A stretch of DNA of 30,508 nucleotides from Paramoeba atlantica (lineage: Eukaryota; Protista; Discosea): contig CDRNVI010000230.1 of NCBI GenBank assembly GCA_977017575.1, positions 1 to 30,508 on the forward strand. The letters are read 5' to 3'. Of this stretch, positions 3,923-30,508 are shown one piece after another. A program made the position numbers and the translations under genes. The number at the start of each line of letters is the position of its first letter. The stretch's first letter is position 1. The notes beneath the pieces are model-generated. The model was not told the DNA's origin and ran no database searches. It saw nothing but the letters and a program-made list of their open reading frames with translations.

Positions 3923-3940
3923 CTCCTTTTCATCATGAAG

Positions 3941-6574: not shown

Positions 6575-6669
6575 AATATAACCATTAATTTTCTCTGAGG
6601 GGCCAAGATAGATTGTGCACAGGGTGTTAGTTTAGCCCCAGGGGAATTCAGTGAAAGATGAAGCTCAAG

Positions 6670-7821: not shown

Positions 7822-8102
7822 TGAACACGTCTACTTTGGTACAGACTAAAGAAGGCGTGTCAGAAATATGTTGAATGAACAACTGAAGAGCAGTCCTCAG
7901 AAGTCTCACGAAAAAGCAAGAAACTTCTTGATGACATCATCAATGGTGTTCTTTATTTAGATTCACAGAAGGTCGACTTGGAGGAGACCAAGGGTTGACT
8001 TGAAGGAGATTGGGAATTGACTTGGAGAAGATCAAGAGTCAGATCAAACAAATAAAGCAGAGAGTCAAGTGTCTTCAGAGTAGCGTACATTGCTCATGTG
8101 CA
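7822..8102 (-). repeat. Gypsy-2 3' LTR
   Basis: 281 bp, 269/281 identical to 14567-14847, adjacent to the PPT. Confidence 0.97.
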
Positions 8103-8104
8103 CT

Positions 8105-8946
8105 CTTCCCACCTGAGAAGTCCTTTGTTTAGGAGAAACAGAGGTGCTCGAAGAAGAGCCTGAGGAGCTTGAAGAGCTTGAGAACTTGGAAGAGGAAGAA
8201 GACTTCTTGGTTGATTTAGAGGTTGACAGTTTGGAGGTTTTCAATGACTTAGAGGAAGAGGAAGAGGAAGAAGACTTCTTGGGTGACTTGGAAGTTGATG
8301 ATTTGGAGGATGATGACTTAGAGGAAGATGATTTAGAAGGAGGTGGATTCAGAGGGTGTTTCTGATGATACCTTTTGATTTGTTCTGAAGCATCAATTTG
8401 TGAAACATGGATCCATTCAGCGTCGGCCTTTCAGTAGTGTTTGAAATGCACTCAGTAATAAAGTTCTCCATTTGAATACTTATGCTTAAGGATTTCCTTC
8501 ACTTCAAAATCATAACCATCAGCATTTTCAACAATCTCTTCAGGTGCTGGCTCTGAATTAACAATAGATATTTCATTTGATTCAGGATGCAGAGTAATCT
8601 CATACTGAACATGGAGTTTCTTTAAGTTCTGAACATTTTGAATTTCTGAATTCTTCTCTTGTTTGAGTTCTTGAATCTGGTAACTTCCATTCTTAAGATC
8701 CTCCACAACCACATAAATTTCTTGGTAGTAATAGAGTCTGTACTTCTTCGCAATCTCTTTTCCTTTTGATTTGTTTCTCTTCAACACTTGATCACCAACC
8801 TTCAACATAGTGTATGTTCCTTCATTTGCTTTGTCATATTGTTGTTTTTGTTTCACAGCCACTTTCTCTCTCTCCTCTCGAACCCAATTAATCACACCCT
8901 CCCTCTCAGTTTGTAGCTTCTTGACATAGTCATCAATCAGTACCAT
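8105..8946 (-). pseudogene. Gypsy-2 integrase C-terminus, chromodomain (~8353-8514) and Ser/Lys-rich tail
   Basis: Reading through TGA at 8452-8454 and 8431-8433 gives FEVKEILKHKYSNGELYY*VHFKHY*KADAEWIHVSQIDASEQIKRYHQKHP, then SKSSSSKSSSSKSSTSKSPKK... up to the PPT. Confidence 0.88.
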
Positions 8947-9237
8947 TTTTTTTTTTTTTTTTGAGGCAGACTTTATTCAATTAGTAGTTCTTAATCTAAG
9001 CCATTTGAATTACATTAAATTATGTTTGTTTTTAACCTCTAACAAGAGGTGAAGTTTTAAACTTCAGCTTAGTTCAGTCAGTCTTTATGCTGAACTTTAG
9101 AACTTCTGCAAGTTCAGGCTGGAGAATGCACATCAGAAGGGAGAATAATCCAAAGCTCCTTCCAAGGGAATTTATCCTCAACTTTTTAGTAGACAGGGCT
9201 GAGATGTAACCTGTTCTGATTTTCACACTTCTTCAAG
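8946..9237 (-). mobile_element. Poly(A)-tailed retroposed insertion (SINE-like, or 3' end of a LINE or mRNA) in gypsy-2 integrase
   Basis: A17 tail (T-run 8946-8962), AATAAA 9 nt upstream of the tail, and a 15-bp TSD CATCAATCAGTACCA at 8931-8945 and 9238-9252. Removing it rejoins KPVVLID|DYVKKLQ. Confidence 0.93.
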
Positions 9238-10061
9238 CATCAATCAGTACCACTGGTTTGTTCACAGAGCTGAAGAGAGAATCGATTGGCATAATTGGAT
9301 GTTTCCCAAAGTGAAGATAGAAAGGTGTGTAACCAGTCGAGGAGGAATGAGAAGTATTGAAAGCAAATTCCACAAAAGGTAAGAGAAGGTCCCAATCATC
9401 TGCATATTTATCAACAAATGAGCGAATAATTGATTCTGTAACTTTGTGGGAACATTCAACATGGCCATTACTTTTGGAGTTGTAGGAGGCAATAAAAGTT
9501 TGTTTCATTCCGAGAAGCTGGGTCAGTTCTGCAAAAATTTGATTTGCAAATTCTGAACCATTATCTGTTACTATCCGCAAAGGCATTGAATTAACACAAA
9601 CATACTGAAGTAAAGCTTCAGCAGAGGCTTTGGCAGAGGGATCTGGAATTGCATACAGACGTATATAGCCACTAAAGTTATCAAGGATAGCCAAAATAAA
9701 AGAATTTCCATGAGCAGTGACTTTTGGTCCCTTTGTACAATCCAGGTGGAGTAAAATTCCAGGATAAGAAGCCATATAAGGGTTTAAATCAGATGTCAAT
9801 GTCTTTGTTTTTGAGTTGATTGCACAATTAAGGCAGCAGTGATAGTAACCTTTGATCACAGCACTCATACCAGGAAAATAATAGGAGACAGCAATTGCAT
9901 CATAAAGTCACTCAAACTTGTGGTGTTCAGAGATTAGATCTGAATGATAAGCATCAAATACTGTATTCCACAAACTCTGGGGCAGAATTGCAGGTGGGAG
10001 ACAACCAGCAGCTGTAGTTTCATCCACTTTCCTCAAGATTCCAGATTCATTAACTCAGTAC
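9233..10061 (-). pseudogene. Gypsy-2 integrase zinc-binding and catalytic core
   Basis: YH..H...YFPGM...CLNC (HHCC-like), LHLDC, AILDNFS, IVTDNGSEF, YNSKSNGHVE, GYTPFYLHFG. Confidence 0.92.
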
Positions 10062-10597
10062 TGTTACGATCCTGTTGGCTCTTGTGTTTTCCATTTGGAG
10101 CCATTCTCACTCCCTCTTCTGCCAAACAACTGATCTCTCTCTCCCTGTTCTCCCCGATTGACACTCTCTCTCTTCCCTCTCTTTTCCTTCTTCTCTTTTC
10201 TCTCTCTTTCTCTTCTTTCCCTTCCTCTTTTTTTTATCCTTCCTCCCTCCTTCTCTTTCTTTCCTCTTTTTTTTCTTTTCTTTTTCTTTTTCCCCTTTTC
10301 TCACTTTTCCTCCCCTCTCTTTTCTCCTGTCTTTTTCCTTTTCTCCGTGCTTTTCAGGATGTTGATTCATGAATGATCCACCTGTGTTCTATTGCAGTTA
10401 TCTGCCACTAAAACGCTCTTTTCACACTGTTTTTGCTGTCTTTCTCTCCTTTGCTTTGTGTTGTTTTCCCCCCTTTTTCTCTGCTGTCACAAATCATTTG
10501 TTTCCCCTTTTCTGTTTGTTGATACAAATAAATCATTCTCTTCAGTTCCTTTCTGTTGTGTTTTCTTGTCCCTCTCCCTCTTCCCCTTGGCCACACA
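10062..10597 (+). mobile_element. Solo LTR (family X, 536 bp) inserted in the gypsy-2 RH-IN connection
   Basis: TGTTACGATCCTG...TGGCCACACA with 5-bp TSD AGTAC (10057-10061 / 10598-10602). Excision restores the pol frame (..TAHKY|*VNESGILRK..). Confidence 0.92.
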
Positions 10598-11279
10598 AGT
10601 ACTTGTGAGCAGTTCATTGGAGTGCCCAAAGATAGCGCTTCCTCTTAGGCAAGAGGCCATTAATCAAGTAATTAATAATCATTGAGTAAAACTTATCTTT
10701 CCTTTGAGCCTGAGCAAGGTAAGGAAGTTCAACTAAAACCCAATCAATGTTATCCATATCTGCTTCAACATTCTCAGAACTTTCTTTTGCTGTGGAAAGT
10801 GGCAGAGGCAGTGATTGAATAGGAGGAATGTCACGAATTTCCGGCTCACTGATTAATTCAATTTTTTCCAAAATGTCATTTTGTCTCAAGAGGATATGGG
10901 TTTTTCCTGAAGAAGATTGTCCCAAATCCACCAACTCTTCAAACCAACAAGTCACATAATCCTTTGAAGTGGCCTTATCATGATATCCAACATACTGGCG
11001 GCTTAGAGCATTAGGGATTGCCATCAACTTTCCAGGTTTGTGAATGACCTTTGGGTGATATTCTAGAATTCAAGCAACCCAATTGCACAGCATATCATGG
11101 TTCGATACTTTCTGTTGACCAGTTTTAAACACAGATTTGAGAGATTTGCAATCACAGAACACAATAGGATTTCGACCACAGATGTAATACTTGAAGTTGT
11201 TTAATGCCCACAGGATTCCAAGGCCCTCCTGCAGAGGATTAGTGTACTTCTGCTGTGTCTCTGTGAGTGTTCGAGAAGC

Positions 11280-11856
11280 TGTGAAGTGGCCAGGAGTTTG
11301 GGGAAGGAAAGAGTGGGCAGGTGAAGGAAAGAAGGAAAGGGAAGAAAGGGAAAAGAAAGAAAGAGAAAAGTCAAGAGCAAATCATGGGAAAGATTGGCGG
11401 CACATCGCAAAGGGAAACCAACCAAGTAAGTTTATTCCTTTTACCAACAAACAAAAGGAGTATTTGTATGGGACAACAAATATAACAAATGTGGAATTGA
11501 CAAGAAGCAAAACAGAATGAAAGACAAAAACACACAAGAAAAAGGACATCTCTGCGGTGGAGAGATTAAATCACAGATAAATGTTACAGAACACAGGATT
11601 AATTGACATAAAGATTGTTTTAAATAGACAAATAAGATGGTGCGAAAATATTAAGGGAACAACTTGATTTCAGAGTGAGAACTGGGTGGGAAGAGCTCAG
11701 ATGAGAGAGACAGGAATACATGCAGAATCAGAATGGTTTGTACAGTTTTACAAATGTTCATCAGGGATATTCACACAACAGGGGAGCACAGTGGTGTACA
11801 AAGAGAAACAGATTAATTTGCACAACATGGAATCAGTTCACACCAGGATTCTGACA
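11280..11856 (-). mobile_element. Solo LTR (family X, 577 bp) inserted in gypsy-2 RNase H
   Basis: Minus strand TGTCAGAATCCTG...TGGCCACTTCACA with 5-bp TSD GAAGC (+ strand 11275-11279 / 11857-11861). Excision restores IEYAS|RTLTETQQKY..GILWAL. Confidence 0.93.
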
Positions 11857-12873
11857 GAAGCATACTCAATATCTCGGTGGTGGCCATCTTGATCCATCTG
11901 AGTGAGAATCGCTCCAAGACCAAGCTTGCTGGCATCAACATGGATAAAAAATTCCTTTGAGAAGTCAGGATGGGCCATACAGGTTTTGGATGTCAAGAGC
12001 TCCTTTAAGAGATGTATTTCCTTGATGGATTCTTGGGATAGTGAAAACTTCTTTGGATCCATCACTTTGGCTTTTCTCAAGTGTGTTGTTAAACTGGATG
12101 AATGAGGGATGAACCATTTTAACCAAGTAACCATTCCCAAAAATCTCTCAACTTCCTTTGGAGTAGTCGGAAGTGGGTAATTCTGGATTGCCTCAACTTT
12201 TTTTCAGATTTGGCTTCAAACCATCCTTCGTCGCGATAAATCCAAGAATTTCAAAATTTGGCTTGCAAAACGAGCACTTTGCTGGTTGGAGCATCAAATC
12301 ATTGTCCCTCAATCTTTGGAAAATTTTTGTCAGATCAGCCAGATGTTGTTCAAATGTTGAGCTGTAACAAAGGATGTCATTAATGTAGGCAAAACAACAT
12401 TGCCAAACCAGACCACTCAAGACCGTTTCAATAAACCGTTGTTGTGTTGCTGGAGCATTACATAACCCAAAAGGCATCAAGAGAAATTCCCAGAGACCAT
12501 ATTTGCTAGTAAAGGCAGCCTTTTCAATGTCTCCTTCTCTGATTGGGATCAACCAGAAAGCCTCAGACAGGTCAATAGAGGAAAAATAAGAAGAACTGCC
12601 AAGTGCAGCTAAGATTTCATTCATACAGGGTAGTGGATAAGAGTCCTTCTTTGTTTTTTCATTCAGGCGATGGAAATCCACACAAAACCGAACATTTCCA
12701 TTCTTCTTGTCCACCAAGAGAATTGGAGCAGCCCAAGGAGAGTTAGATTTTCTAATCACTTTCCTTTTCACCATCTTGTCAATATGTTTCCATATGATGC
12801 AGTCTTCAACAGGTGTGGTTCTATGGGGTTTTGCTTTCAAGGGTGGACCCTCTGCCTCGATTGGATGACTCAT
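11857..12873 (-). pseudogene. Gypsy-2 RT and RNase H N-half
   Basis: SPWAAPILLVDKK, RFCVDF, YPLP, SIDL..AFW, MPFGLCNAPATQQRF, YIND, KCSF, FFIHVDASKLGLGAILTQ. Confidence 0.95.
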
Positions 12874-12900
12874 TGCTGTGGTCCTAGTAATTGGACCTTC

Positions 12901-14110
12901 TCACTTCTCATCATCCCACAAGTCTTGGAAAGAAACCAACATCTCCACTAATTGTATTTTCTGCCTGTTATTCAATTCAGCATTATCCAAACCAAATTTC
13001 TTGTATGCTTCTTTGAATTTATCAGGTGGATCTTTTTTATGTGCAGCAGACTTGTTTTGGGTGGCAATGTGAGTAAGCAATTGTATCACAGATGAGTCAC
13101 AATTGAGGTCAGGGTCGGGGTGTCTGGTGGATCGATCAGATTTGCCATTCTGATGATCGTGCAACTTCTGTCTCTTCCGTTTAGGTTTTTGAAATAAATC
13201 CTCATCCTCAATCATTTTCTCAAGCCATGGTCCAGTGAGTGCACAGAGATAATTGGCACCAGTCTTTGTATTAACTGATTTTGTGCAAGGTGGTTGTTTC
13301 TTGGGTACAGATTTTCGAAGACAGGGTTCAATCAAAGAGTGTTTCGAGAGTTGAAGAAGCTCAGTGTTTTTGACATCATGGTGATTAAGCTGATAAACTG
13401 TTCCAACTTCGAGATTTTTCTTCACTTGGACCTCAGTCTCAGAATGATTCATCACAAGAACATTCAGTGTGTTGTGTTTTTTACCTTGCTCAATTGTAAC
13501 CAAGCCAGGAAGGAATAACAAACTCTCTGATCCAATTGATGGAAAGAAGAATCCTTCAGGTGACAATGCACGGCCGTTCAGCATTAGTGGAAGGAACACT
13601 GATGATCTCAGAGGGATTGCCTTTGTCTCAACCGAGAGTACTAAGGTCTTATCTTGCCTCTCTACGTTGATGTAGAAATCTGGATCTGTGACCTGAGGAA
13701 GGGTGATGTTGAGCTGTGCCGAATTTGCCTGGATGCATCTCCAACCTTTCCACATTAAATGACCATCTCTGAGGCCTAGGCGACATTGTTTCGTGTTTGA
13801 ACAGGAAGGTCATCAATAATAAAGAACCAGAGTCCTTGGGAAAACCTCTTTCCAACTTGACCACGGTGTGAATCTCTTCATTAATCACAACTTCAGTTGA
13901 GTTTCCCACTTTGACTTGAAGCTCATCAGCTTGCCATCAGTTCAGGATCTCAAATCCAGGACGCAAAAGTTGCTGACAACTGATCGCATTGATACCAGAT
14001 CCCATGTCTATACAAGTAGTAGTTGCTAATCCACCTGCCTGAGACACAACTTCAAATGCACAACCAATATCCCGGCTTTCCGCATTGATTACTAAATTCG
14101 GAAGAACATT
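12901..14110 (-). pseudogene. Gypsy-2 aspartic protease remnant plus PR-RT spacer with a dUTPase-like beta-rich segment
   Basis: CIDMGSGINAIS (degenerate DTG motif, ~14000); FFIIDDLPVQ after a frameshift; then a 284-aa open stretch containing ..LPGLVT..NVLVMNHSETEVQVKKNLEVGTV. Confidence 0.7.
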
Positions 14111-14566
14111 GATCACGTGATCCGAAGGAAGGTTGGTATGGGATGATGGATCAGCCCGAACGTGAACATCAGAGTGTTTCAGAGGTTCTTGAACGTGAGT
14201 GTTGGACTGACTCAGAGGTTCTTTGAATTCAGTTGAGCAACTAGATGAAATCGAAGAATACAATACAATGGGCTCAGAGCAGTAGAAAAACCCAATGGGA
14301 AAACTGGTGCTCGAAGTTCAAAAAAAAAGAAAAGTTGCTTGCTCAAAAAACCAATTGGTGGAAAAATAGCTGACTCAAAAAGAAGATAAACAATCGAAAG
14401 TAGAAGATCGGTTGTTGTGAGGAAACCTGGCCTCCAGGAAAAAACCTCACCAGAATGTTTGTTCGTGAAAACAAGGCACTGTTGTTGTTTCAATTCAAAG
14501 AACAAATGTTCAATCTCGGTATCGAAAGTGAGCGTGAGTTCCAAAAATCAAAACCAGCATCACCAA

Positions 14567-14847
14567 TGAACACGTCTACTTTGGTACAGACTAAAGAAGG
14601 TGTGTCAGAAATATGTTGAATGGACAACTGAAGAGCGGTCCTCAGAAGTCTCACGAAAAAGCGAGAAACTTCCTGATGACATCATCAATGGTGTTCTTTA
14701 TTTAGATTCACAGAAGGTCGACTTGGAGGAGACCAAGGGTCGACTTGAAGGAGATTGGGAATTGACTTGGAGAAGATCAAGAGTTGGATCAAACGAATAG
14801 AGCAGAGAGCCAAGTGTCTTCAGAGTAGCGCACATTGCTCATGTGCA
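14567..14847 (-). repeat. Gypsy-2 5' LTR
   Basis: 281 bp TG..CA, followed on the minus strand by T and then TGGTGATGCTG. Confidence 0.97.
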
Positions 14848-14915
14848 CCACACTCAAATAAAATAAACAAATTTTTTTTGAAAAAAGAAGATTTCCTTTT
14901 TCAATTTTGTGGAGC

Positions 14916-17900
14916 TTAATCCATTTGAGGTTTTTTGAATTCAATTTCATCATCACCAAAACCACATTCATCTCGAACCTTTCTCTTTTTACTTTCTCTT
15001 TCTTCTCCTTGTTCTTCTCCTTCTTCTCTTTGTTCTCCTTCTTCTCTTTGTTCTTCTTTTCCATTTGATTCAATCTTTTCATTCCCTTCTCGTTTTGCAG
15101 GTTTAATTGAACTATCAATGTGAATGTATTCCTATCCAAAAATTGTGTTTCAATTCTTTGTAAATTTCAAAAATAATGAGAAAAAGAAAAAGAAAAACCT
15201 TCAAAAACTTCTTCACTGATTGAGAAGAGGTGATGTCTGCTGGTGTTTGTCCCTAAAATATTTTAAAATATCAAAAAAAAGAGATTCATCAAAAAAAGTG
15301 AATCAATAAATCAAAGAAAAATGAACCAAGTTATTTTTGATTTCAAGATTTGCACCATATTCACACAAAAGTTTCACTATCTCCAACTGTCCCTTTTGTG
15401 CAGCCAGATGGAGCGCAGTATTCCCAGCCTATCATTTTGGGTTGAATGAATTGTTCCCAAAGAGTACCCCAAAAACAAAGAAATATGAAAAACCTCATTT
15501 GTTTTGTTGATTTCAACACCATTTTGCAACATAAATAAAATATACTTATTGGTTGCCCGAAAATGTTGATATTGGATAAGAACCATAAGAGGAGTGAAAC
15601 CCTTCAAAAAAAAATGATTAAAATGATACTCAAAAACACTCTTTCAAAAAAAAATCAAATTAGAAAATACTTGATAGATTTCATTTACATCTGCTCCATT
15701 TTCAACTAAGAACTTAACAACTGGGAAATTAACAAAATAGGAATTACAAACATGATGAAGAATACTCTTTCCCTGTTTTTCCAAAACCAAATTGATGGTA
15801 AATTGAAAGAAAAAAAGAAAGAAAGAAAGAAGAGAGAGGATTGTTTTGAGGAAAGTGATCAAAAAACCAACAAACTTGAACAATGAGATGTGCTCCATTT
15901 TGTAATAATAATTCTGCAATATCCAAATTGTTGTGTATACATGCAAGAGTCAGAGGTGACCAACTTAACTGTGGTGATGAGACTTTGAATAAGACAAAGA
16001 GAAAAGAAATTTCAAAGTTTTTGAAAAAAAAAAAAAAAGAGAATACAAATAAGTTACTGTGAACTCCATTGATTGGACAATTTTTAGAAATCAAAAATTG
16101 AGCCAAATCAAATTTCCCTTTTTGACTTGCAAAACATAAAGGTCCAACATTCAATTCCTGGTGTGTGGAGATAAAAAAATGAAAAAAAGGGGGGAGTTGT
16201 GAATATTGTGTTGAAAACAGAAAAATTGTTCACAAATAAGAAAAAATACCTCTTTCATATTCTCCAATAAATAAGAGATTACATCCATGTGACCCTCTTC
16301 ACATGCCAACACAAGACCATCACCGTTCCCAACTTGAAGTTGAGCACCATGTTTGGTGAAGAAAGAAACAATTTTAAGATCTCCTAATTTACATGCCATG
16401 TGAAAGGGGTTCTAATAATTTGAGAGAAATTTTAAAATCAATTTTTTTGATTTTTACAATAAAAAAAAAATCAAAAAGAGAAAACAAACTCGATTTCCAA
16501 AATTGATTGAAGCACCTCTTTCCACCAATAAAGTAACAATGTCAAAATGACCTCCGTCAGTTGCCTCACACAAAGCTGTCTTTCTCTTTTTGTTTCACAA
16601 AAGTTGATTTTAATATCATCAAAGAAATCTCAAACAAGAGAAAAAAAAAAAAGAAAACCAGATTTCCTTGTTGATCAATCTGAAGATCTTCTATCTTCAA
16701 AAAAGTTTTGACAATCTCTAAATTCCCTTTTTGACAAGCAACATGCCATGGAGACATTTGATCCTAAAATGACAAAAGGACAAAATAAAATTCATTGATT
16801 TCCCTTTCTTCCCTCCTCCCTCCAACATAAATCTAAAGAAGAGACATTCAAAAAATAAAAAACATACTTTTGAAAGGGTATTTGGATGAGCACCCCTTTC
16901 AAGAAGGAAATGAACCATTTTGATATCATTCTCCAAAACTGCAAAACATAAAGGACTCCAACTCTACCAAAAAGAGGTGAATTAAAGGAAATCTCTTTTG
17001 TTTCAGAAATTAATTGTGAAAACTTTGAAAAATGAGAAAGAGAAAAAAAAAAAGGGGTGTGGAAGAAAAAAATAACATTTCGTGAAGAAAAGTTGATATT
17101 TGCGCCTTTGTTGATCAATAATTGTGCCATTTCAAAATCCCCTCTTTTACAAGCACAACAAAAAGAAGTTCCTCCCTTCTGTTCCCCCACCCCCAAAAAA
17201 AGAAAATTGGTAAAGATTAGTTTTTTTTTATGAAAACATTCAAAAAACTGAAGAAAAACTTTACATTTGTTGACAAATCTACCTTTGCTTTGTTGTCAAT
17301 CAAAAGATTTGCCATTTTAATGTCTCCCCTTTCACAACAAATCCATAAAGCGCTTTTCCCTCCCTGTTCAAACAAAATGATCATTTTAAAAAACAAATAA
17401 TAACTTCAAAAGAGGGATCTAAAAATTGATTTGATAAAGAAAGAGAAAGAAAGAAGAGAAACTGTCTTTGTTTGATCTACTTTGGCTCCTTTTTCAATCA
17501 AAAATTTGGCAATTTCAAAGTGTCCTTTTTCACAAACTGAAGATAATGCAGTCTTATTTGGTGTTCGCTACAATCAAACAAATAAAAAAAGAAGAATTGA
17601 GTTGAACACACCAAACAACAATCAAGATGAAAAAATATGATTAGAGAAAAAAAAAAAAGAGATGAGTTACTGAGATTGGATGAAGAGAAGAGCCTTTCTC
17701 AAAAAGAAATTGAACTATTTCAAGATTCCCAAATTCACAAGCGATAATCAATGGATCTGATCCATCCTAAAAACCAAACCAACAGAGACAATCAATCATC
17801 AAACTTTTTTCCTCCTAAGACAAACAACCACTTTTTCAAAAAGAAAGAGAAAAAAACTCGAGCAAGACTCTTGAGGGAAGCACCATTTTCAAGCAACAAA

Positions 17901-18226
17901 GTAATCATCTTTAAGTCTCCTTTTTCACAAGCTCTCATCAAAGGAGTAAACCCTTTCTTTTCTCAAAACTTTCAGATCAAGATCACAACTCAACATACAC
18001 ACAGAATCATCACCAGAGATAATCATGATGATGATCATACACACAAAGATGATGATGATCAATCACAAAAAAGATCAACACACAAAAAAAGAAAGGAGAG
18101 AGACTGAACAACCTGGTGTCTTGGCGATTGATTGACATCCACTTTTTGATTCAAAAGGAGTTGTTTGGCCTTTTCACAATCCCCCTCTTCCACAGCTTCA
18201 AACAATTGGCAGTCTGTTAATGACAT
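14916..18226 (-). CDS. Ankyrin-repeat protein, copy A (~17 exons, acidic C-terminal tail)
   Basis: Exon 1 18226-18113 (MSLTDCQLFEAVEEGDC..), then ~100-nt exons each encoding one ankyrin repeat (KGFTPLMRACEKGD.., DGSDPLIIACEFGN.., MSPWHVACQKGN.., AGNTALHLAAQKGQ..) with GT..AG introns. Last exon 15131-14916 (EYIHIDSSIKPAKRE..KKRK..QMD*). The exons I translated were open; not every exon was checked. Confidence 0.88.
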
Positions 18227-18541
18227 TTCTTTCTCTTTCTCTCTCTTTCTCTCTCTTTCTCTTTTCAAAAAAACAAACTTCTCAAACCAAAAGAGAGAAG
18301 AGAGAAAAAGAGGAAAATGGCAAGTCGCTCCTTTCTTTTTAGAAAACTAAATTTAGCCATTTTCATCATTTCCTCTCTCTTTTGATTTTCATTTTCTCTC
18401 TTTCTTTTGTTCTGAAATTGTCACCTTATTTTTTATTTTTCTATTTTATTATTTTCCCCCTCTTCCCCCTCTCCACCACCCAAATAAAATAAACAAATTC
18501 TTTTTGAAAAAAAAAGATTTCCTTTTTCAATTTTGTGGAGC

Positions 18542-21500
18542 TTAATCCATTCGAGGTTTTTTGAATTCAATTTCATCACCACCAAAACCACATTCATCTC
18601 CAATCTTTCTCTTTTTACTTTCTCTTTCTTCTCCTTGTTCTTCTCCTTCTTCTTCTCCTTCTTCTTCTCCTTCTCTTTGTTCTTCTCCTTCTTCTCTTTG
18701 TTCTCCTTCTTCTCTTTGTTCTTCTCCCCCTTCTCTTTGTTCTTCTCCCCCTTCTCTTTGTTCTTCTTTTCCATTTGATTCAATCTTTTCATTCCCTTCT
18801 CGTTTTGCAGGTTTAATTGAACCATCAATGTGAATGTATTCCTATCCAAAAATTGTGTTTCAATTCTTTGCAAATTTCAAAAATAATGAGAAAAAGAAAA
18901 AGAAAAACCTCCAAAAACTTTTTCACTTGTTGAGAAGAGGTGATGTCTGCTGGTGTTTGTTCCTAAAATATTTTAAAAATATCAAAAATAAGAGATTCAT
19001 CAAAAAAAAGTAAATCAATAAAATCAAAGAAAAATGAACCTGATTATTTTTGATTTCAGGATCAGCACCATGTTCACACAAAAGTTTCACTATCTCCAAC
19101 TCATCCCCACATGCAGCCAGATGGAGCGCAGTACTCCCATCCTATCATTTTGGGTTGAATGAATTGTTCCCAAAGAGTACCCCAAAAAACAAAGAAATGT
19201 GAAAAACCTCATTTGTTTTGTTGATTTCAACACCATTTTGCAACATAAATAAAATACGCTCATTGGTTGCCCGAAAATGTTGAAATTGGATAAGAGCCAT
19301 GAGAGGAGTGCGACCCTTTGAAAAAAAAATGATTAAAATGATACTCAAAAACACCCATTCAAAAAAAAATCAAATTTGAAAAAATACCTGATAGATTTCA
19401 TTTACATCTGTTCCATTTTCAACTAAGAACTTAACAATTGGTAACTTAACAGAATAGGAACCACAAACTTGATGAAGAATACTCTTTCCCTGTTTTCCCC
19501 AAAACCAAATTGATGGTCAATTGAAAGAAAGAAAAAAAAGAAAGAAAAAAAGAAAGAAAGAAGAGAGAGGATTGTTTTGAGGAAAGTGATCAAAAAAACC
19601 AACAAACTTGAACAATGGGATGTGCTCCATTTTGTAATAATAATTCTGCAATATCCAAATTGTTGTTTGCACATGCAAGAGCCAAAGGTGATTGATTTGC
19701 CTGTGGTGATGAGATTTTTAAAAAAAAAAATGAACGAGTAAAATGATACTCAAAAACACCCATTCAAAAAAAAATCAAATTAGAAAATACTTGATAGATT
19801 TCATTTACATCTGCTCCATTTTCAACTAAGAGCTTAACAACTGGTAAAGTAGCAGAAGAATAACCACAAACATGATGAAGAATACTCTTTCCCTGTTTTT
19901 TCCAAAACCAAATTGATGGTAAATTGAAAGAAAAAAAAGAAAGAAAAAAGAGAGAGGATTATTTTGAGGAAAGTGATCAAAAAAACCCAACAAACTTGAA
20001 CAATGAGATGTGCTCCATTTTGTAATAATAATTTTGCAATATCCACATTGTTGTTTGTACATGCAAGAGCCAAAGGTGATCGACCATGCTGCGGTGATGT
20101 GAGACTTTTGAAAAAGACAAAGAGAAAAGAAATTTCAAAGTTTTTGAAAAAAAAAAAGAAAAAAAAGAGAATACAAATAGATTATGAACTCCATTGATTG
20201 GACAATTTTTAGAAATCAAAAATTGAGCCAAATCAAATTTCCCATTTTGACTTGCAAAACATAAAGGTCCAACATTCAATTCCTGGTGTGTGGAGATAAA
20301 AAAAGGTTAAAAAAAGGGGTGGGGGTGGTTGTGTTGAAAACAGAAAAAAATGTTTCTGAATAAAAAAATACCTCTTTCATATTCTCCAATAAATAAGAGA
20401 TTACATCCATGTGGCCCTCTTGACATGCAAAGACAAGACCATCACTGTACCCAACTTGAAGTCGAGCACCATGTTTGGTGAAGAAAGAAACAATTTTAAG
20501 ATCTCCTAATTTACATGCAATGTGAAAGGGGTACTGCCTCTGTAACAATTTTTAGAGAAAGAAATTTTAAAATCAAAGTTTTTTTCATTGTTCCAAATAA
20601 AAAAAATAAAAAAGAGAGAAAACAGACTCGATTTTCAAAATTGATTGAAGCACCTTTTTCCACCAATAAAGTAACAATGTCAAAATGACCTCCCAGAGTT
20701 GCCTCAAACAAAGCTGTCTTTCCCTTTTTTTTCACAAAAGTTGATTTCAATAAATCATCAAAGAAATCTCAAACAAGAGAAAAGAAAAAAAGAAAAAACC
20801 TCTTTTCCTTGTTGATCAATCTGAAGATCTTCTATTTTCAAAAAAGTTTTGACAATCTCTAAATTCCCTTTTTGACAAGCAACGTGAAATGGAGACATTC
20901 GATCCTAAAATGACAAAAGAACAAAATAGAATTCATAAATCCCCCTTCCTCACCTCACCTCCAACATACATATAAAGACAAGCCATCCAAAAAATAAAAA
21001 AAAAGTAAAATGTTCAAATAAAAAAATTAAAAAAAAAGAAAACAGACATTATCTCTAAAATTGATTGAAGCACCTCTTTCCACCAATAAAGTAATAATGT
21101 CAAAATGACCTCCCTCAGTTGCCTCATACAAAGCTGTCTTTCCCTTTTTGTTTCACAAAAGTTGATTTCAATAAATCATCAAAGAAATCTCAAACAAGAG
21201 AAAAGAAAAAAAGAAACCCAATTTCCTGATTGATCAATCTGAAGATCTTCGATTTTCAAAAAAGTTTTGACAATTTCTAAATTCCCTTTTTGACAAGCAA
21301 CATGCCATGGAGACATTCGGAACTAAAATGACAAAAGGACAAAATAAAATTTCGTAAATTTCTCTTCCTCACCAACATAAATATAAAGACAAGACATTCA
21401 AAAAATAAAAAATAAAAAATAAAAAAGAGAAAACAGACTAGATTTTCAAAATTGGCTGAAGCACCTCTTTCCACCAATAAAGTAATTATGTCAAAATGAC

Positions 21501-23133
21501 CTCCCTCAGTTGCCTCACACAAAGCTGTCTTTCTCTTTTTGTTTCACAAATGTTGATTTCAAAATTATCAAAGAAATCTCAAACAAGAAAAAAGAAAAAA
21601 AGAAAACCAGATTTCCTGGCTGATCAATCTGAAGATCTTCTATTTTCAAAAAAGTTTTGACAATCTCTAAATTCCCTTTTTGACAAGCAACATGCCATGG
21701 AGACATTTCATCCTAAAATGAGAAAAGGACAAAATAAAATTCATAAATTCCTCTTTCTCCCCTCCCCCCTCCAACATAAATATAAAGAAGAGCCATTCAA
21801 AAAATAAAAAACATACTTTTGAAAGGGTATTTGGATTAGCACCCTTTTCAAGAAGGAAATGAACCATTTTGATATCATTCTCCAAAACTGCAAAACATAA
21901 AGGACTCCAACTCTACCAAAAAGAGGTGAATGAAAGAAATCTCTTTTGTTTCAGAAATCAATTGTGAAAACTTTGAAAAATGAGAAAGAAAAAAAAAGGG
22001 GGTGTGGAAGAAAAAAAATAACATGTTGTAAAGAAAAGTTGATATTTGCGCCTTTGTTGATCAAAAATTGTGCCATTTCAAAATCCCCTCTTTTACAAGC
22101 ACAACAAAAAGAAGTTCCCCCTTTCTGTCCCCCAAAAAATAAAAGATTAGTTTTTTTTTTCTGAAAACATTCAAAAAAACATTCAAAAAAACTTTACTTT
22201 TGTTGACCAATCCACTTTCGCTTTGTTGTCAATCAAAAGATTTGCCATTTTAATGTCTCCCCTTTCACAACAAAGCCACAAAGGGCTTTTCCCTCTCTGT
22301 TCAAACAAAATGATCATTCAAAAAACAAATAATAACTTCCAAAAAAAAATGGAAAGAGGAATCTAAAAAGTGATTTGATATGAGGGAGAGAAAGAGAGAA
22401 AGAGAGAAAAAGAGAAAGAATTAAAGAAAGAGAAACTGTTGTTGTTTGATCTACTGTGGCTCCTTTTTCAATCAAAAATTTGGCAATTTCAAAGTATCCT
22501 TTTTCACAAACTGAAGATAATGCAGTCTTCTTTGGTTTTTGCTACAATCAAATAAAAATAAAAGAAGAAGAATTGAGTTGAATACACAACACCAATCAAG
22601 ATGAAAAAATATGATTAGAGAAAAAAAGAGATGATTTACTGATAACTGAAGAAGAGAAGAGCCTTTCTCAAAAAGAAACTGAACTATTTCAAGATTCCCG
22701 AATTCACAAGCAATAATCAATGGATTTGACCCATCCTTCAAAAACCATAACAACAGAGACAATCAATCATCAAAATTTTTTAAATCTATCTTTTTTTCGA
22801 GAAAAAGAAAGAGAAAAAAACCTGAGCAACTCTTTCAAGGGAAGCTCCATTTTCAATCAACAAAGTGATCATCTTTAAGTCTCCTTTTTGACAAGCTCTC
22901 ATCAAAGGAGTAATCCCTTTCTTTTCTCAAAACTTTCAAATCAATATCACAACACACACAGACAGAGACACAGAATCATCACCAGAGATAATCATGATAA
23001 AAAAAGAAGAAAAGAAGATGATCACCTGGCGTCTTGGAGCTTGATTGACATCCACTTTTTGATTCAAAAGGAGTTGTTTGACCTTTTCACAATCTCCCCC
23101 TCCCACAGCTTCAAACAATTGGTGATTTGCCAT
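18542..23133 (-). CDS. Ankyrin-repeat protein, copy B (~23 exons; expanded by internal exon-pair duplications)
   Basis: Exon 1 23133-23026 (MANHQLFEAVGGGDC..); same exon order as copy A plus extra copies of two exon pairs; last exon 18841-18542 (100 codons). Confidence 0.87.
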
Positions 23134-23464
23134 TTCCCTCTCTCTCTCTTTCTCTCTTTCTCTTTCTCTTTCTCCTCTCACCCCAAAAAAACAAACTTTT
23201 CACCAAAGACACACCAAAACCAAAGAGAGAAAAAGAGGAAAATGGCAACTTGCAGTCCTTTTTTTTAGAAAACTAAATTTAGCCCTTTTCATAATTTCTC
23301 TCTTCTTTTTGATTTTCATTTTCTCTTCTTGTTCTGAAATGGTCCTCTTATTTTGGTTTCCATTTTATTGTCTCTCCCTTCCCTCTCCCCCACCCCACCA
23401 TCCCAAATAAAATAAACAATTTCTTTTTGAAAAAAGAAGATTTCCTTTTTCAATTTTGTGGAGC

Positions 23465-24517
23465 TTAATCCATTCGAGGTTTTTTGAATTCAATTTCATC
23501 ACCACCAAAACCACATTCATCTCCAATCTTTCTCTTTTTACTTTCTCTCTCTTCTCCTTGTTCTTCTTCTCTTTCTTCTCCTTCTTCTCTTTGTTCTTCT
23601 TTTCCATTTGATTCAATCTTTTCATTCCCTTCTCGTTTTGCAGGTTTAATTGAACCATCAATGTGAATGTATTCCTATCCAAAAATTGTGTTTCAATTCT
23701 TTGCGAATTTCAAAAAGAATGGGGAAAAGATTTAAAAAACCTTCAAAAACTTCTTCACTGAGTGATAGTAGGTGGTGTCTGCTGGTGTTTGTCCCTAAAA
23801 TATTTTGAAAATATCAAAAAAAAGAGATTCAGCAAAAAAAAGTGAATCAATAAAATCAAAGAAAAATGGACCTGATTATTTTTGATTTCAGGATTTGCAC
23901 CATATTCACACAAAAGTTTCACCATCTCCAACTTACCCCCAAGTGCAGCCATATGGAGCGCAGTACTCCCAACCTACCATTTTGATTGAATGAATTGTTC
24001 CCAAAGAGTACCCCAAAAAACAAAGAAATGTGAAAAACCTCATCTGTTTTGTTGATTTCAACACCATTTTGCAACATAAATAAAACACGCTCATTGGCTG
24101 ACCGAGAATGTTGAGATTGGAGAAGAGCCATGAGAGGAGTGCGACCCTTTGAAAAAAAAATGATTAAAATGATACTCAAAAACACCCATTCAAAAAAATT
24201 CAAATTAGAAAATACTTGATAGATTTCATTTACATCTGCTCCATTTTCAACTAAGAACTTAACAACTGGTAAATTAACAAAATAGGAACCACAAACTTGA
24301 TGAAGAATACTCTTTCCCTGTTTTCCCCAAAACCAAATTGATGGTAAATTGAAAGAAAAAAAAAAAAGAAATAAAGAAGAGAGAGGGTTGTTTTGAGGAA
24401 AGTTATCAAAAAAAACCAACAAACTTGAACAATGAGATGTGCTCCATTTTGTAATAATAATTCTGCAATATCCAAATTGTTGTTTATACATGCAAGAGTC
24501 AGAGGTGACCAACTTGA
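23465..24517 (-). pseudogene. Ankyrin-repeat gene copy C, last six exons only; the 5' part is replaced by bacterial-type DNA
   Basis: Colinear with the 3' six exons of A and B; homology stops at the CAG acceptor at 24518-24520. Confidence 0.85.
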
Positions 24518-24520
24518 CTG

Positions 24521-25104
24521 AACGTCGGCAATTAAACTACCTTAATGGTGTTGTGAGACGTACGCGTGGGAGACTATTCGTACCAACTAATGCGCAAGGA
24601 CAGCCAGCACTAAATCCTGCTATACCAGCAGTAGTTGATACAGAAGTAGTTGATACAGAGGAAGACGTCATTGAAGAAGAAAGCGTACTAGCTCAGCAAC
24701 CAGAGTCAGAACAACATCCTCCAACGGACGCGGCGCGATACGAAAGGAGCAATAGGCGAGTCAGTTCAACATTCTTTGGCAATTCGTCAATGCCACCTTC
24801 AGAAGGTAGCGAATTACAAATACAGCGAGAGGCCAGTTCAGTACTCACAATTCCTGCGTTTGTTATGACTAGTGATACGGGTACTGATACAGAACAGAGC
24901 GGGCAGCTTTCAGTGCTGCCATCAAATCCAAATCAAGATCATGTCCTGTTTTCTTCAGGCAGTCATTCATCTTCATTGGTTGGTCAGTTTAGTGACATTA
25001 TTCATCAACAGCAAGAGCCTGAGTCTTTACCCGCTCAACAGGAAAAAGAGGAAGCCAGTGCTAGTGAAGAAGAGGGAGTAGTACACCTAGTTGAGTTATC
25101 TTGA
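24521..25104 (+). CDS. C-terminal part of an acidic, S/Q/E-rich hypothetical bacterial protein, 5'-truncated at the junction
   Basis: Open frame from the junction to TGA at 25102-25104, with a VVDTE-VVDTE 15-bp tandem. The track's start at 24439 lies in antisense ankyrin exon sequence and is not credible. Confidence 0.6.
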
Positions 25105-25424
25105 TGTATTAATTGATTAGGCGTGTTGTCAGGCGCAAGTGAAGTATTGGCAATGGGGTTCTATTGCGTTAATTACTCGTGTGATTAGGCTTGCTGATTG
25201 CTGCAATGTTTGAAGAGCACTCGAGTTTTTCTTCAGAAAATTATTATATTAGCCAGGATGTGCTTTTTAGCAAAAAGTGGGGGCACACCTGTCTATGGCA
25301 TAGACAAAAGCATACCTAACCATCATGAGTAATGATTTTCCTATCTAGTCATTGATAGTCACGCACACGAGGATGAATCGCATTCTACAGCCTATAAATA
25401 GCACTGTTATGATACGCTAATGCG

Positions 25425-26300
25425 GTCAGGTAGCAAAGCAGATGTTACCACCTGCTCTGCCCCCTAAGAACTGCACAGGACGCTTTTGCGTCATACAGCT
25501 CAAGCCTCTTTAAGCCTTCTATGAAAGCCGGTTTTGCCACTTTCCATTTGGAAAGCACATCGCCTTTACGATACTCACTTGCAACCGACCTACATACATT
25601 AACACTTTCTGCTAATCGATAGCATTCCATGTTATTTTAGTGCTGTGGACGCATCAGTTAATGAATAAATCATTACTGTCATTTGCTTTTCCACATTATG
25701 TCAGTTCTACAAATTCTCTCGTAATAAGAGACCAGACAGAAGTCTGCCCGCTTTCGCGTGAGATGATGTTTCAACCTCTATCTAACGCATTACACATTAG
25801 CATTCGCTTTCTCTGTCCTCCTTTACCCGCATTCCCATCGGCTCACTTTACAACTCGCTTTCTTCAAATAAGAAGAGAAATACGGGCTTACCACGTTCCT
25901 CTTAAGTAACAATGACGGGTTAGGTTCTGCCTCTCCACCGGTAGCTCTACATCTGCGTGTTACTAAAGTAGACAATAACAACCTGGCTACTCACCTTTTG
26001 GTTCAAGCTTGTCAGCATCTTTAGCTTGTCTAGCGTTACGACGTTTATCAGCAGTTCATATACATTAACCATACCGTCAAACCTAGCCCCCAAACCGCAT
26101 GATGCTTGCAGTATTTCCCTCACTTTCACAAGTTCAGTTTACCTGGCTATACAGGTGGGGTACATTGTCCTATTCGCTTCACACCTCTCCGTTACCAGAA
26201 ACGCATGGAACAGTAGGTTACTATTAACAGAATAATAGGTTTGACCCTCCTTTTGTTTAATTAAAGTTCAAACAATTACTTAAGCGACCTCGTGTCGCAC
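25425..26300 (-). mobile_element. Group IIB (chloroplast-like/CL1-type) intron, internally deleted and effectively ORF-less
   Basis: 5' end GTGCGACACGAGGTCGC at 26300. 34-nt domain V GAGCTGTATGACGCAAAAGCGTCCTGTGCAGTTC (25501-25468) with AGC triad. Domain VI 13-bp stem with GTAA loop and bulged A at 25431. 3' end CCTGAC at 25425. EBS1 CTACTT (25971-25966) vs IBS1 AAGCAG and EBS2 ACGCTA (26036-26031) vs IBS2 TAGCGC each pair 5/6. Confidence 0.9.
25561..25682 (-). pseudogene. N-terminal remnant of the intron-encoded RT/maturase
   Basis: MTVMIYSLTDASTAL, frameshift, then ITWNAID*QKVLMYVGRLQVSIVKA. This resembles the W.AIDW..V...V.RLQ.RI.KA start of CL1-class intron-encoded proteins; the rest is deleted. 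Confidence 0.75.
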
Positions 26301-26479
26301 CTGCTTAGCGCTATCACTAAACAACCCAGCGTATTAACTGCGCTGATGATTTGAATGAACTTGATAACCACTGCGGTACTAGCGATTATCACTAGCGATG
26401 GTGCCGCAGCCAGACACTCTAGCAATACCTGACTGCAGCTATCACAACAGTGTCAACAAAGCACAGGAGACCAACTGCC

Positions 26480-26752
26480 ATGAAACAATCTATTCTATCC
26501 AATTACGATACCCATGAACAAGACGAAGATGACTACAAAACACCACACGAAGCATTAAGCGCCAAATTACATCAAATGGCCGACATCGCTAATGTTACGA
26601 TTCGAGGTCAGCCCAGTGAACGTGAGTTGTACCACATTTTGTGGGGACTGACTGATTTACTGCAACTGGCCTGCGCGCAATGCGATGAACTGCGCCCCGA
26701 AGATTTGATGAGCGAGGCGCAATTAGCTGATAGGGCCTGTAAAGAAAGTTAA
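26480..26752 (+). CDS. Small hypothetical protein (90 aa)
   Basis: AGGAG at 26465-26469 upstream of ATG 26480; plausible helical composition; no family recognised. Confidence 0.65.
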   Translation: MKQSILSNYDTHEQDEDDYKTPHEALSAKLHQMADIANVTIRGQPSERELYHILWGLTDLLQLACAQCDELRPEDLMSEAQLADRACKES

Positions 26753-26968
26753 AAACGCATCGGGAATGACGCCAGCCAATCAATTGAAGGTGCCCCTAAC
26801 TTAACTGGCGTCACTTCCCGCCACCTAGCCTATCAATACAGTAAACAAAGTTTGATAGCCAACGTGGTTCTTATCATTGCGTATCCATTCGAAAGGAGTC
26901 AGTTGAATCCAAAAATGGATAACACCACACGACAAATAAAACATATTACTAACAGGAGAAAAAAACCA

Positions 26969-27433
26969 ATGCCAACCACCACCCCCAACACATCGGTATT
27001 AGAACAAGTCGCTGCTCTACCCAGCCTATCGCTGACTGAATTAAAATCACTGTGGCAAACTGTATACGATACCAAACCCAATACACAACAAAAAAGTTTA
27101 CTGGTAAGAAGATTAAGTTATCGCTTGCAAGAATTGGCTTATGGTGTTGACCCTGATATCAATAAACGCTTAGCTGAGCAAGCCAAACGCTATTATCCTT
27201 CCAATAAAAAAGTGAATAAACGCAAGCATCATTACACACGCCCAATGGTAGGCGCTCGTTTAGTGCGTCATTACAAAGGCATAAACCACACCGTCACTGT
27301 GTTAGAACACGGCTATGAATATGACGGTTGTGTCTATAGCAGCTTATCTAAAATCGCCACGTTAATTACTGGTAACAATTGCTCGGGGGTGTTCTTTTTT
27401 GGGTTACGTAAAAATAATGGAGTCATTGCATGA
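26969..27433 (+). CDS. DUF2924 family protein
   Basis: AGGAG at 26954-26958. Motifs LSLTELKSLW, RRLSYRLQELAYG, VGARLVRHYKG..HTVTVLEHGYEYDG..YSSLSKIATLITG..SG..FFGL match my recollection of DUF2924. ATGA overlap with the recombinase. Confidence 0.88.
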   Translation: MPTTTPNTSVLEQVAALPSLSLTELKSLWQTVYDTKPNTQQKSLLVRRLSYRLQELAYGVDPDINKRLAEQAKRYYPSNKKVNKRKHHYTRPMVGARLVRHYKGINHTVTVLEHGYEYDGCVYSSLSKIATLITGNNCSGVFFFGLRKNNGVIA

Positions 27434-28824
27434 AACGAAACGCAAAAAATAGTGATACAACCACGACACACCCACAACGCTGTGCCATTTATACGCGCAA
27501 GTCCACTGAAGAAGGCTTAGAGCAAGAATTCAATAGTCTGGATGCACAACGCGATGCCTGTGAATGTTACATTGCTTCACAAAAACATGAAGGCTGGCTA
27601 CTACTCGATGACCATTATGATGACGGTGGCTTTACCGGTGGCAACATGGAACGCCCTGCCTTAAAACGACTCATGCAAGAGATTGAACAGGGTCTCATTG
27701 ATATTGTCGTCGTCTATAAAGTTGATCGCTTGTCTAGGTCATTGGCTGACTTTGCCAGGCTTGTGAGTTTATTTGATGCACATAACATCTCATTTGTCTC
27801 AGTTACCCAACAGTTTAATACCACTTCTTCGATGGGACGGTTAACACTTAACATCTTATCATCCTTTGCCCAGTTTGAACGGGAAGTCATTGGCGAGCGG
27901 GTACGCGACAAATACGCAGCCTCTAAACGCAAAGGCTTGTGGATGGGGGGTGTGGTACCACTGGGTTATGATGTCAATGACAGACAACTGCAGATTAATG
28001 AGGATGAGGCTAACATAATACGCACACTCTTTGAGTTGTTCCTCAAAACCCAATCACCTACTCAAATGGTCAAACCCTTAGCCGATATGGGCGTTAAGAG
28101 CAAACAACGTATCACTAAAAAAGGCAAAACCGTTGGCGGCGTATCGCTTGATATCGGTGGCATTTATAAAATCCTGAATAACCCCATCTACATCGGCAAG
28201 ACTCAATACAAAAACGAACTCTATGAGGGACGTCATCAAGCCATCATCTCTCAAGAAATCTGGGAAGCCACACAAACCTTATTACGTCGCCGCGCTGTTA
28301 AGCCCACCACACAAACAAAACGGGGGCAGCGCGCAGTTCTGAGCGGTTTGCTGAAATGCAGTGGCTGCTTATCGGCGATGACACCGGTGCATACCACCAA
28401 ATGCCAAGGCAAAAAGCTCTATCGTTATTATGCCGCCACCGGTTACAAACGAGGTCGCTGTCCTGAATGCCCTGTTAAACAAATCAGTGCCGGTGAAATT
28501 GAAACACATGTCTTGCAACAAGTACAAACCGTATTGACCACGCCAGAGTGTATTCTTGATACCTGGAAAGCCGCCAAGCAATACAGTGGAACTGTCACTA
28601 ACAACGATGTTCGCCAAGCATTGAGCAATATCGCCCCCACCTGGCAATCACTCTTTCCTACCGAACAAAAACGCCTATTGGAATTGCTGCTCACACAAGT
28701 GGTATTACACCCTGATCACCTCGATATTCAACTAAACATCAATGGTATGAGTGACCTTGCACAACAATTACGTTGTGATACCCAGCAACACGAGGCAACA
28801 CCATGCAAACTACTATCATTTTAA
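27430..28824 (+). CDS. Large serine recombinase (resolvase, recombinase and zinc-ribbon domains), 464 aa
   Basis: RCAIYTRKST (catalytic Ser), YDDGGFTGG..RPAL, VVYKVDRLSRS, FAQFERE.I.ER, NPIYIG, GLLKCSGC..CPECP. Confidence 0.95.
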   Translation: MKRNAKNSDTTTTHPQRCAIYTRKSTEEGLEQEFNSLDAQRDACECYIASQKHEGWLLLDDHYDDGGFTGGNMERPALKRLMQEIEQGLIDIVVVYKVDRLSRSLADFARLVSLFDAHNISFVSVTQQFNTTSSMGRLTLNILSSFAQFEREVIGERVRDKYAASKRKGLWMGGVVPLGYDVNDRQLQINEDEANIIRTLFELFLKTQSPTQMVKPLADMGVKSKQRITKKGKTVGGVSLDIGGIYKILNNPIYIGKTQYKNELYEGRHQAIISQEIWEATQTLLRRRAVKPTTQTKRGQRAVLSGLLKCSGCLSAMTPVHTTKCQGKKLYRYYAATGYKRGRCPECPVKQISAGEIETHVLQQVQTVLTTPECILDTWKAAKQYSGTVTNNDVRQALSNIAPTWQSLFPTEQKRLLELLLTQVVLHPDHLDIQLNINGMSDLAQQLRCDTQQHEATPCKLLSF

Positions 28825-29207
28825 ATGACAATGTCATCTCCATTAAAGTACCTATTGCATTCAAACGCTATCGTGGCAAAACATGGTTAACGTTACCTGA
28901 AAACAATGTGCCATCCACCACTAAATCGCAGCCCAATGCCTCATTTGTTAAAGCATTGGCAAAAGCTTATTGCTGGCAACAACTATTAGATAAAAGAAAG
29001 TTTGCAACACTGAGTGTCTTAATCAAACACCACAATGTAAACTCCTCTCACGCCTCGCGCATCTTGCGTTTAAATTTCCTAGCTCCCGACATCAAGCAAG
29101 CCATTTTAGATGGCACACAGCCGCCGGAGTTGAGCCAGCGCAGTTTGTTATCGCCCTTCCCTCTGCTGTGGGAGGAGCAGCGACGCCACTTTGGGTTTGC
29201 CAGATAA
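28803..29207 (+). CDS. Recombinase-associated small protein with an HTH-like segment
   Basis: Overlaps the recombinase stop by 22 nt. KALAKAYCWQQLL, SRILRLNFLAPDIKQAILDGTQP and PFPLLWEEQR resemble the protein usually found after DUF2924-recombinase pairs. Confidence 0.8.
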   Translation: MQTTIILNDNVISIKVPIAFKRYRGKTWLTLPENNVPSTTKSQPNASFVKALAKAYCWQQLLDKRKFATLSVLIKHHNVNSSHASRILRLNFLAPDIKQAILDGTQPPELSQRSLLSPFPLLWEEQRRHFGFAR

Positions 29208-29242
29208 CTTTGAATACTGACTTTAGCTCAGCATAAAACAAT

Positions 29243-29443
29243 TCAATCAAAATGCGGATTATGTGCTGTATACATTCGTGGTGACTCGTGTACATTTAAC
29301 TTATTGCGAATAATACCCATCGCATACTGATAATGCTCACGTTCAAGATGACTGAGCACCCACCCCAGCAGCTTATTAGAGTCACTGCTTTTACGTGTTA
29401 ATAACGGTTTTCCATTGTGCACAATAGTAGCTTCATAAGCCAT
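29243..29443 (-). CDS. Small hypothetical protein (66 aa)
   Basis: Strong SD (GGGAGGAG) upstream of ATG 29443; convergent with the recombinase module. Confidence 0.6.
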   Translation of the reverse strand: MAYEATIVHNGKPLLTRKSSDSNKLLGWVLSHLEREHYQYAMGIIRNKLNVHESPRMYTAHNPHFD

Positions 29444-29766
29444 CGCCTTTCTCCTCCCTGAATTTTAAGAACAGTCCGTCCATTGTCATTCAAACAATTT
29501 GCAAATAGGGCAGGAAAAAATATCATTATTTTGTGTTGGCACTAACCACGCAACGCTATTATGCCATTTCTAGTACTCATCATCAGTAAGTTACCAAAAC
29601 GTTGTTGTCAAAGCAACTTCAACATAAATCATAATCAAAAATATACCGTCACAATGCTATCAACACCGTTTCTGATAATACACACACAATACCTAACTTG
29701 AAAAATCAGAGTGCAGATACAATCTATACAACGCTAATATACAATGACATCATTAGTACAAAGAAA

Positions 29767-30096
29767 ATGACAATGACATTAAAATCGATACAGGGAAATT
29801 ACGCTGGGAATAGCTGTGCTTCTATCAATCAACACAATAGCCAATTGAATTCAACAACCACGCAAAACTATCAGCGTATTATCTACCAAAGACCGTTTTC
29901 ATATCCTAAAAAATCACTTGTCGAATCATCTAATAAAGTTGATGTTGAACCCGCACAATTAGCTTGCCATCGATATGCTTTATGGCAATTATCAGCTGAT
30001 GAGTTAGCCGAAAAAACAACTGTTTTTTCAAAAGAGCATCCATCCATAAAACAACAAGTCAAGCAAATTATTAATGCTATTGATGTCAATAAATAA
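29767..30096 (+). CDS. Hypothetical protein with an N/S/T/Q-rich N-terminus
   Basis: Longest ORF in the interval. ATG at 29767 or 29773 is preferred over the TTG at 29698; no family recognised. Confidence 0.5.
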   Translation: MTMTLKSIQGNYAGNSCASINQHNSQLNSTTTQNYQRIIYQRPFSYPKKSLVESSNKVDVEPAQLACHRYALWQLSADELAEKTTVFSKEHPSIKQQVKQIINAIDVNK

Positions 30097-30330
30097 AAAA
30101 CTGAGGTAATGTTAGAACAACAAGATAAGGTATATTAATTGTCTGTATAATGTGGACAGTTTAAATGTAGCCGCATTCAAAATCAATGATCGCATTTGAA
30201 GAGCTTGCCACCAATAAAAAACAGTGTATGCTTCTCTCTAATCCTGATAATTCTAACGTTAATAAAAGGAGTATAAGAGAAAAATTGTCACTGCCTGTGA
30301 CTTTAAATATGTGCTAAAGGAGTTGCTGTC

Positions 30331-30508
30331 ATGTTCAACCAACCTAAAAGAAATACAAAATCCTCAGCTGCTGGATTTACATCTCAGCCATCAAGCCAGC
30401 CTGTCAGACATTCGGGCATGTCACCTATCTCATTAAGCAGCTTGACAGAAACCTCATCACCTTCTATCGAACAAGCATTACTGCAAACACACTTCAAGTG
30501 TCCAATAC
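30331..30508 (+). CDS. N-terminus of a protein running off the window; S/T/P-rich leader then ..HFKCPI
   Basis: AAAGGAG at ~30316-30322, ATG 30331, open to the end of the window (59 codons; too short for the ORF track). Confidence 0.6.
   Translation, partial: MFNQPKRNTKSSAAGFTSQPSSQPVRHSGMSPISLSSLTETSSPSIEQALLQTHFKCPI

Follow-up and report, generated by a model that had tools for sequence, protein, structure and literature searches.

A host-bacterium join at the end of a subtelomeric ankyrin contig of Paramoeba atlantica is probably a chimeric molecule

Results

Organization of the host side

We analysed a stretch of 30,508 nt from Paramoeba atlantica (contig CDRNVI010000230.1), hereafter the window, which from its length and telomeric start appears to be the whole contig. 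It opens with a telomere repeat, (CCCTAAA)n, at 1-700 (read directly; repeat family D1), in agreement with an earlier note on this DNA, made from the letters alone, that had placed a telomere there. Next, at 701-14800, comes eukaryotic subtelomeric DNA in which LTR-retrotransposon ORFs (RVT_2, RVT_1, rve) are decayed, as recognized by Pfam matches and composition. It is succeeded at 14800-24519 by minus-strand ankyrin-repeat gene paralogs, copies A, B and C, which form an AT-rich array defined by direct-repeat families D2-D20, Ank Pfam matches and composition. A direct repeat of 286 nt with 95% identity is found at 7818-8103 and 14563-14848, its two copies 6.7 kb apart (family D11); retrotransposon-like ORFs lie between the copies, which may be paired LTRs. 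Throughout 701-24519 the host side is depleted in CpG (observed/expected ratio, o/e, 0.18-0.26) and has a TG+CA o/e of 1.21-1.32, values that fit heavy methylation or RIP-like decay, the TG+CA measure being non-separating as it also stands at 1.25 on the bacterial side.

The retained part of the last copy in the array, copy C, comprises five predicted phase-0 exons on the minus strand at 23741-24517, placed by three-frame reading and motif coordinates at 24425-24517, 24216-24317, 24039-24146, 23872-23973 and 23741-23794. Each exon holds one ankyrin repeat, has a length that is a multiple of 3 nt, starts directly after AG and is followed by GT. Since this pattern is so clean in AG start, following GT and phase, the CAG at 24520-24518, directly before exon 24425-24517, is a credible predicted splice acceptor, as had been proposed. 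The orphan ankyrin exons described in the earlier note are present as well, five of its six being placed in our mapping, and its suggestion that they could be spliced to an upstream transcript from the bacterial side found no support.

Sequence and position of the junction

The host array ends abruptly between 24519 and 24520. On the plus strand, copy C reads ...CCAACTTGACTG up to the join and AACGTCGGC after it (read directly), and the paralogous units near 15.96, 19.70 and 20.08 kb read ...CTG followed by (C/T)GGTGATG (alignments A1 and A2). Copy C and these three units are alike up to the CTG at 24518-24520; past it only the paralogs stay together, and copy C carries AACGTCGGC in place of their (C/T)GGTGATG. 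On the minus strand this corresponds to CATCACC(A/G)CAG running directly into the exon in the paralogs, versus CCGACGTTCAG running into TCAAGTTGG in copy C. The junction is thus present as first written down, with host homology stopping at the CAG (minus strand, 24518-24520), the predicted acceptor, which holds the last host-like bases by both alignments and by exact comparison with the bacterial chromosome described below. This comparison narrows the ambiguity at the join, initially put at up to 3 bp, to 1 bp: identity to the bacterial chromosome already begins at G24520, so that the two sides overlap by 1 bp.

The breakpoint coincides with the first base of codon 722 of a 915-codon bacterial ORF, so that the reported truncation of a bacterial gene in its middle is borne out, and so is the reported switch in composition, with GC at 0.32 left of the join versus about 0.43 (0.425) right of it, and CpG o/e at 0.26 in the subtelomere and 0.18 in the ankyrin array versus 0.85 to the right. 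Along the window, GC runs at 0.30-0.35 over the ankyrin array, at 0.43-0.46 from about 24.5 to 29.5 kb and at 0.35-0.40 in the final kilobase. An apparent 221-aa ORF at 24439-25104 in the ORF list is a read-through of the join; no exact product of this junction-spanning ORF is on record in public assemblies, a result that is uninformative.

A random breakpoint would fall at most 1 nt from any of the ten exon boundaries in the 777 nt of copy C with a chance of about 4%, and at such a distance from an acceptor with a chance of about 2%. We treat the splice-acceptor position of the breakpoint as a coincidence that is predicted neither by a chimera nor by a transfer and does not discriminate between them. 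An origin through RNA or cDNA, considered for the splice-site coincidence, was rejected, as the introns between the retained exons are still there.

The bacterial segment is identical to a bacterial chromosome

The 5,989 nt from 24520 to 30508 match positions 7091-13079 of locus L001 with 0 mismatches and 0 gaps in an exact comparison, and none of the 227 CpG sites in this segment is changed. L001 (ena:ERZ24900291:ctg4025c) is the same record as OZ220716.1, "MAG: Gammaproteobacteria bacterium ... chromosome: 1", of 2,447,832 nt, a name obtained through a species-representative genome collection. The segment therefore forms part of a separate bacterial chromosome, an outcome that the earlier note had named as speaking against integration. 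OZ220716.1 extends past both ends of the matching block, and over 1,212 letters left of the join L001 is identical to a second locus, L002 (logan:ERR14835899). Exact look-up of the recombinase encoded in the segment returned two places, ERZ24900291 ctg4025c and a 5.5-kb Logan contig of ERR14835899, and product look-up of the 915-aa ORF returned the MAG chromosome only; a search for publications on the MAG accession found none.

Host and bacterial DNA share no similarity, the bacterial ankyrin genes compared with the host ankyrin array included, and no repeat is shared at the join. Assembler overlap through a shared repeat was rejected on this ground, and because the two genomes share no sequence that could produce an overlap error, at least one real molecule must have carried the join. 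At its other end, the window stops at 30508 inside a bacterial U-box gene, 178 nt in. It thus contains a single junction, with host DNA absent beyond it, and the 5' half of copy C, which might have resumed past the bacterial block, does not do so before the window stops in bacterial DNA.

These observations bear on the possibility of a real, heritable and extremely recent transfer, in which a double-strand break within the subtelomeric ankyrin array would have taken up at least 6 kb of symbiont chromosome through end joining at 1 bp of microhomology, the inserted block still being unmutated and unmethylated on account of its youth. A joined molecule must have existed, with no shared sequence to mislead the assembler, and the overlap at G24520 is what end joining would give; foreign DNA, moreover, is known to settle in subtelomeres, as it does in bdelloid rotifers. 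Against such a transfer stand the 0 changes in 5,989 nt and 227 CpG, beside a host CpG o/e of 0.18-0.26, and the absence of a second junction. We consider a heritable transfer very unlikely; the DNA would have landed precisely on the border between an intron and an exon and would have been caught still undecayed, in a genome where CpG otherwise erodes fast.

Gene content and genomic context of the segment

At its left end the segment carries codons 722-915 and the stop of the 915-aa ORF, cut at the join and free of Pfam domains (24520-25104, plus strand; L001 gene 4928-7675). An ORF-less group II intron, multi-copy in the bacterium, occupies 25425-26300 on the minus strand, its 5' end at about 26300 being approximate; Rfam covariance models recognise intron domains D1-D4 and, likewise on that strand, the D5/D6 core (RF02012 at 26087-26239, 120 bits, gathering threshold 34; RF00029 at 25425-25503, 46.4 bits, gathering threshold 40). 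This intron of about 0.9 kb is bacterial, not host. In the public runs, contigs break over the intron region and depth is 2-10x higher there, which indicates several copies. A second copy with 98.9% identity lies at L004:4032-4933, beside a paralogous recombinase cassette, and a maturase on the same chromosome (L004:1199-2755; TIGR04416, 335 bits) could serve the ORF-less intron in trans.

Further right lie a 90-aa ORF of unassigned function (26480-26752, plus strand; L001 gene 9051-9323, converted by offset), a DUF2924 protein of 154 aa as called in the bacterial chromosome (26969-27433, plus strand; PF11149, E 2e-38; L001 gene 9540-10004) and a large serine recombinase at 27430-28824 on the plus strand, whose Pfam domains are Resolvase, Recombinase and a Zn ribbon (PF00239, 2e-38; PF07508, 3e-14; PF13408, 5e-10). 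Small ORFs with no known domain follow, as found in the ORF list and the L001 gene calls: 134 aa at 28803-29207 (plus), 66 aa at 29243-29443 (minus) and 109 aa at 29767-30096 (plus). The last feature, at 30331-30508 on the plus strand, is the start of a gene for a 648-aa U-box protein, of which 59 codons precede the window end (L001 gene 12902-14848; PF04564).

OZ220716.1 holds five paralogous cassettes of DUF2924 gene and recombinase (L003-L007), with protein identities of 100, 88, 83, 83 and 65%; all are found between 1.21 and 1.52 Mb, within about 0.3 Mb, a pattern that resembles either an island rich in recombinases or one family of related integrative elements. On the bacterial side, the join coincides with no mobile-element end and with no apparent att-like site, the breakpoint lying inside an ORF. 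Integration mediated by the recombinase or by the intron was rejected, since that ORF is unrelated to either and the breakpoint is not an element end.

Beside the segment, the chromosome carries the complete U-box gene (L001:12902-14848) and two genes for ankyrin-repeat proteins (L001:15402-16442 and 18657-19979). Other L001 neighbours are a ParB-methyltransferase, an IS transposase and a RelE/HTH pair, and NCBIfam matches at other loci of OZ220716.1 (cydAB, the group II intron maturase, methyltransferases, kinases) represent ordinary bacterial genes. An Atlas search with CydA placed the bacterium no more finely than the phylum Pseudomonadota, and one with the copia polyprotein of the host reached no further than Eukaryota. 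U-box and ankyrin-repeat proteins are eukaryote-like and typical of intracellular bacteria. OZ220716.1 is an ordinary bacterial chromosome whose eukaryote-like genes would suit an intracellular life style, and the fit of such proteins to life inside a eukaryote is a point in favour of a recent transfer.

Public sequencing runs across the join

We compared the junction region with Logan contigs of other runs (X1, X3, X5 and X6), that is, of libraries different from the source library, represented by their longest pieces only and with rare variants dropped. In X1, from organism A, a 1,185-nt contig with a depth of about 10,000 covers 24520-25446 and continues 258 nt further left in native bacterial sequence, and the last letters of this extension, ...GGTTCTGCAGAC, equal the bacterial chromosome upstream of the join exactly. 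The same loose end into native bacterial sequence was seen in two contigs of X3, also from organism A. X5, which has another organism label and belongs to another study, contains a 5,517-nt contig with the length and register of L002 that runs through 24520-27500 without a difference and adds 1,212 bacterial letters leftward, the host side being absent. X6 holds parts of a related bacterium only. Contigs reading through 24520 into native bacterial sequence therefore occur in three runs, and none of the contigs listed for X1, X3, X5 and X6 bridges 24520 to the host, rare forms being prone to drop out of such data. These results, too, count against a heritable transfer; a missing bridging contig is itself weak evidence, because a true nuclear copy would form a branch of about 1% that could be lost.

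Summed contig depth rises at 24520, from about 3-5 thousand to 10-40 thousand in X1 and from about 2-3.6 thousand to 8-370 thousand in X3, in line with the coverage step that the earlier note had envisaged for an artefact; left of the join the depth adds up many short contigs of paralogs, and the step therefore gives no clean measure of copy number. Single host contigs have depths of about 45-240 and are at most about 140 nt long. Bacterial DNA is about 50-100x more abundant than host DNA in the organism A libraries, an excess that makes chimeric molecules of host and bacterium likely, and the depth right of the join matches the abundant bacterium, not the host, which again weighs against transfer. 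In favour of transfer, host-like and bacterial words are contained together in four organism A samples, so that a stable association, and with it an opportunity for transfer, is plausible.

In the organism A runs X1-X4, depth reaches very high values and varies greatly, between 45 and 370,000 within 5 kb, and the data sets are small. This pattern suggests that the libraries were amplified from low input or from single cells, a setting prone to chimeric molecules. The same pattern in X1 and X3, taken as a sign of amplified low-input material, is also compatible with a real but non-heritable integration in one cell or a small subclone, caught by chance in a low-input library. An event of this kind explains a true joined molecule, zero divergence and the lack of support in the other runs; on these data, however, it looks no different from a library chimera, and nothing positive speaks for it in particular. 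We give it a slim chance.

Discussion

Taken together, the evidence favours a join that is a chimeric molecule of host and bacterial DNA placed at a contig end and not a gene transfer, a reading to which we assign a probability of roughly 85%. The earlier note had found the two equally consistent with the lack of decay; zero mismatch, native continuation, the depth step and the missing return to host sequence shift the balance towards the chimera. At least three quarters of the CpG in the host flank is gone, yet all 227 of the 227 CpG sites in the segment are intact, there is no second junction, and the breakpoint falls at no mobile-element end, each of which favours the chimera. Chimeric molecules are, in addition, far commoner than fixed transfers with zero divergence. 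From this we infer that the joining molecule is an artefact rather than a real integration.

In one sequenced molecule, or very few, a fragment of the subtelomeric ankyrin array would have become joined to a chromosome fragment of a co-sequenced gammaproteobacterium, both fragments coming from the same sample; ligation could bring this about, as could template switching while the library was prepared or amplified. The assembler would then have ended a short contig, capped by the telomere, with the chimeric molecule, so that everything right of 24520 would be plain bacterial chromosome, taken from a part of it with many mobile elements. The telomeric start and the length of only 30,508 nt suggest that the last 6 kb correspond to about one read's overhang on a short contig. 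A contig that ends inside sequence identical to an abundant bacterium is also expected from a graph assembler for a true and very recent insertion.

The locus resembles known chimeras of host and co-sequenced bacterium in that the block matches the bacterial chromosome without mismatch, sits at a contig end and breaks in mid-gene, and in that it has no integration signature, bacterial-level depth and no independent bridging sequence. It departs from the chimera model in its breakpoint on a predicted host splice acceptor, a coincidence of 2-4% that an artefact does not predict. Wolbachia inserts in insect and nematode genomes share with it a donor that is apparently of intracellular type and co-occurs with the host, and minimal microhomology at the join; accepted cases, however, have both junctions, reads at host depth and usually some divergence or decay, whereas our locus shows a single junction, no divergence at all and the depth of the bacterium.

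A real join would offer a rare view, at age zero, of transfer from a symbiont to the nucleus, beside a telomere. The switch in sequence is real, the junction as a biological feature most probably is not, and its practical value is one of quality control: the last 6 kb of the piece should be trimmed or flagged.

The gene order within the segment, a DUF2924 gene followed by Resolvase, Recombinase and Zn-ribbon domains, with five paralogous copies in the one chromosome, is like that of the bacterial integrative cassette of DUF2924 and large serine recombinase. The cassette plays no part in the join, which lies 2.4 kb upstream of the DUF2924 gene (26969) in an unrelated ORF.
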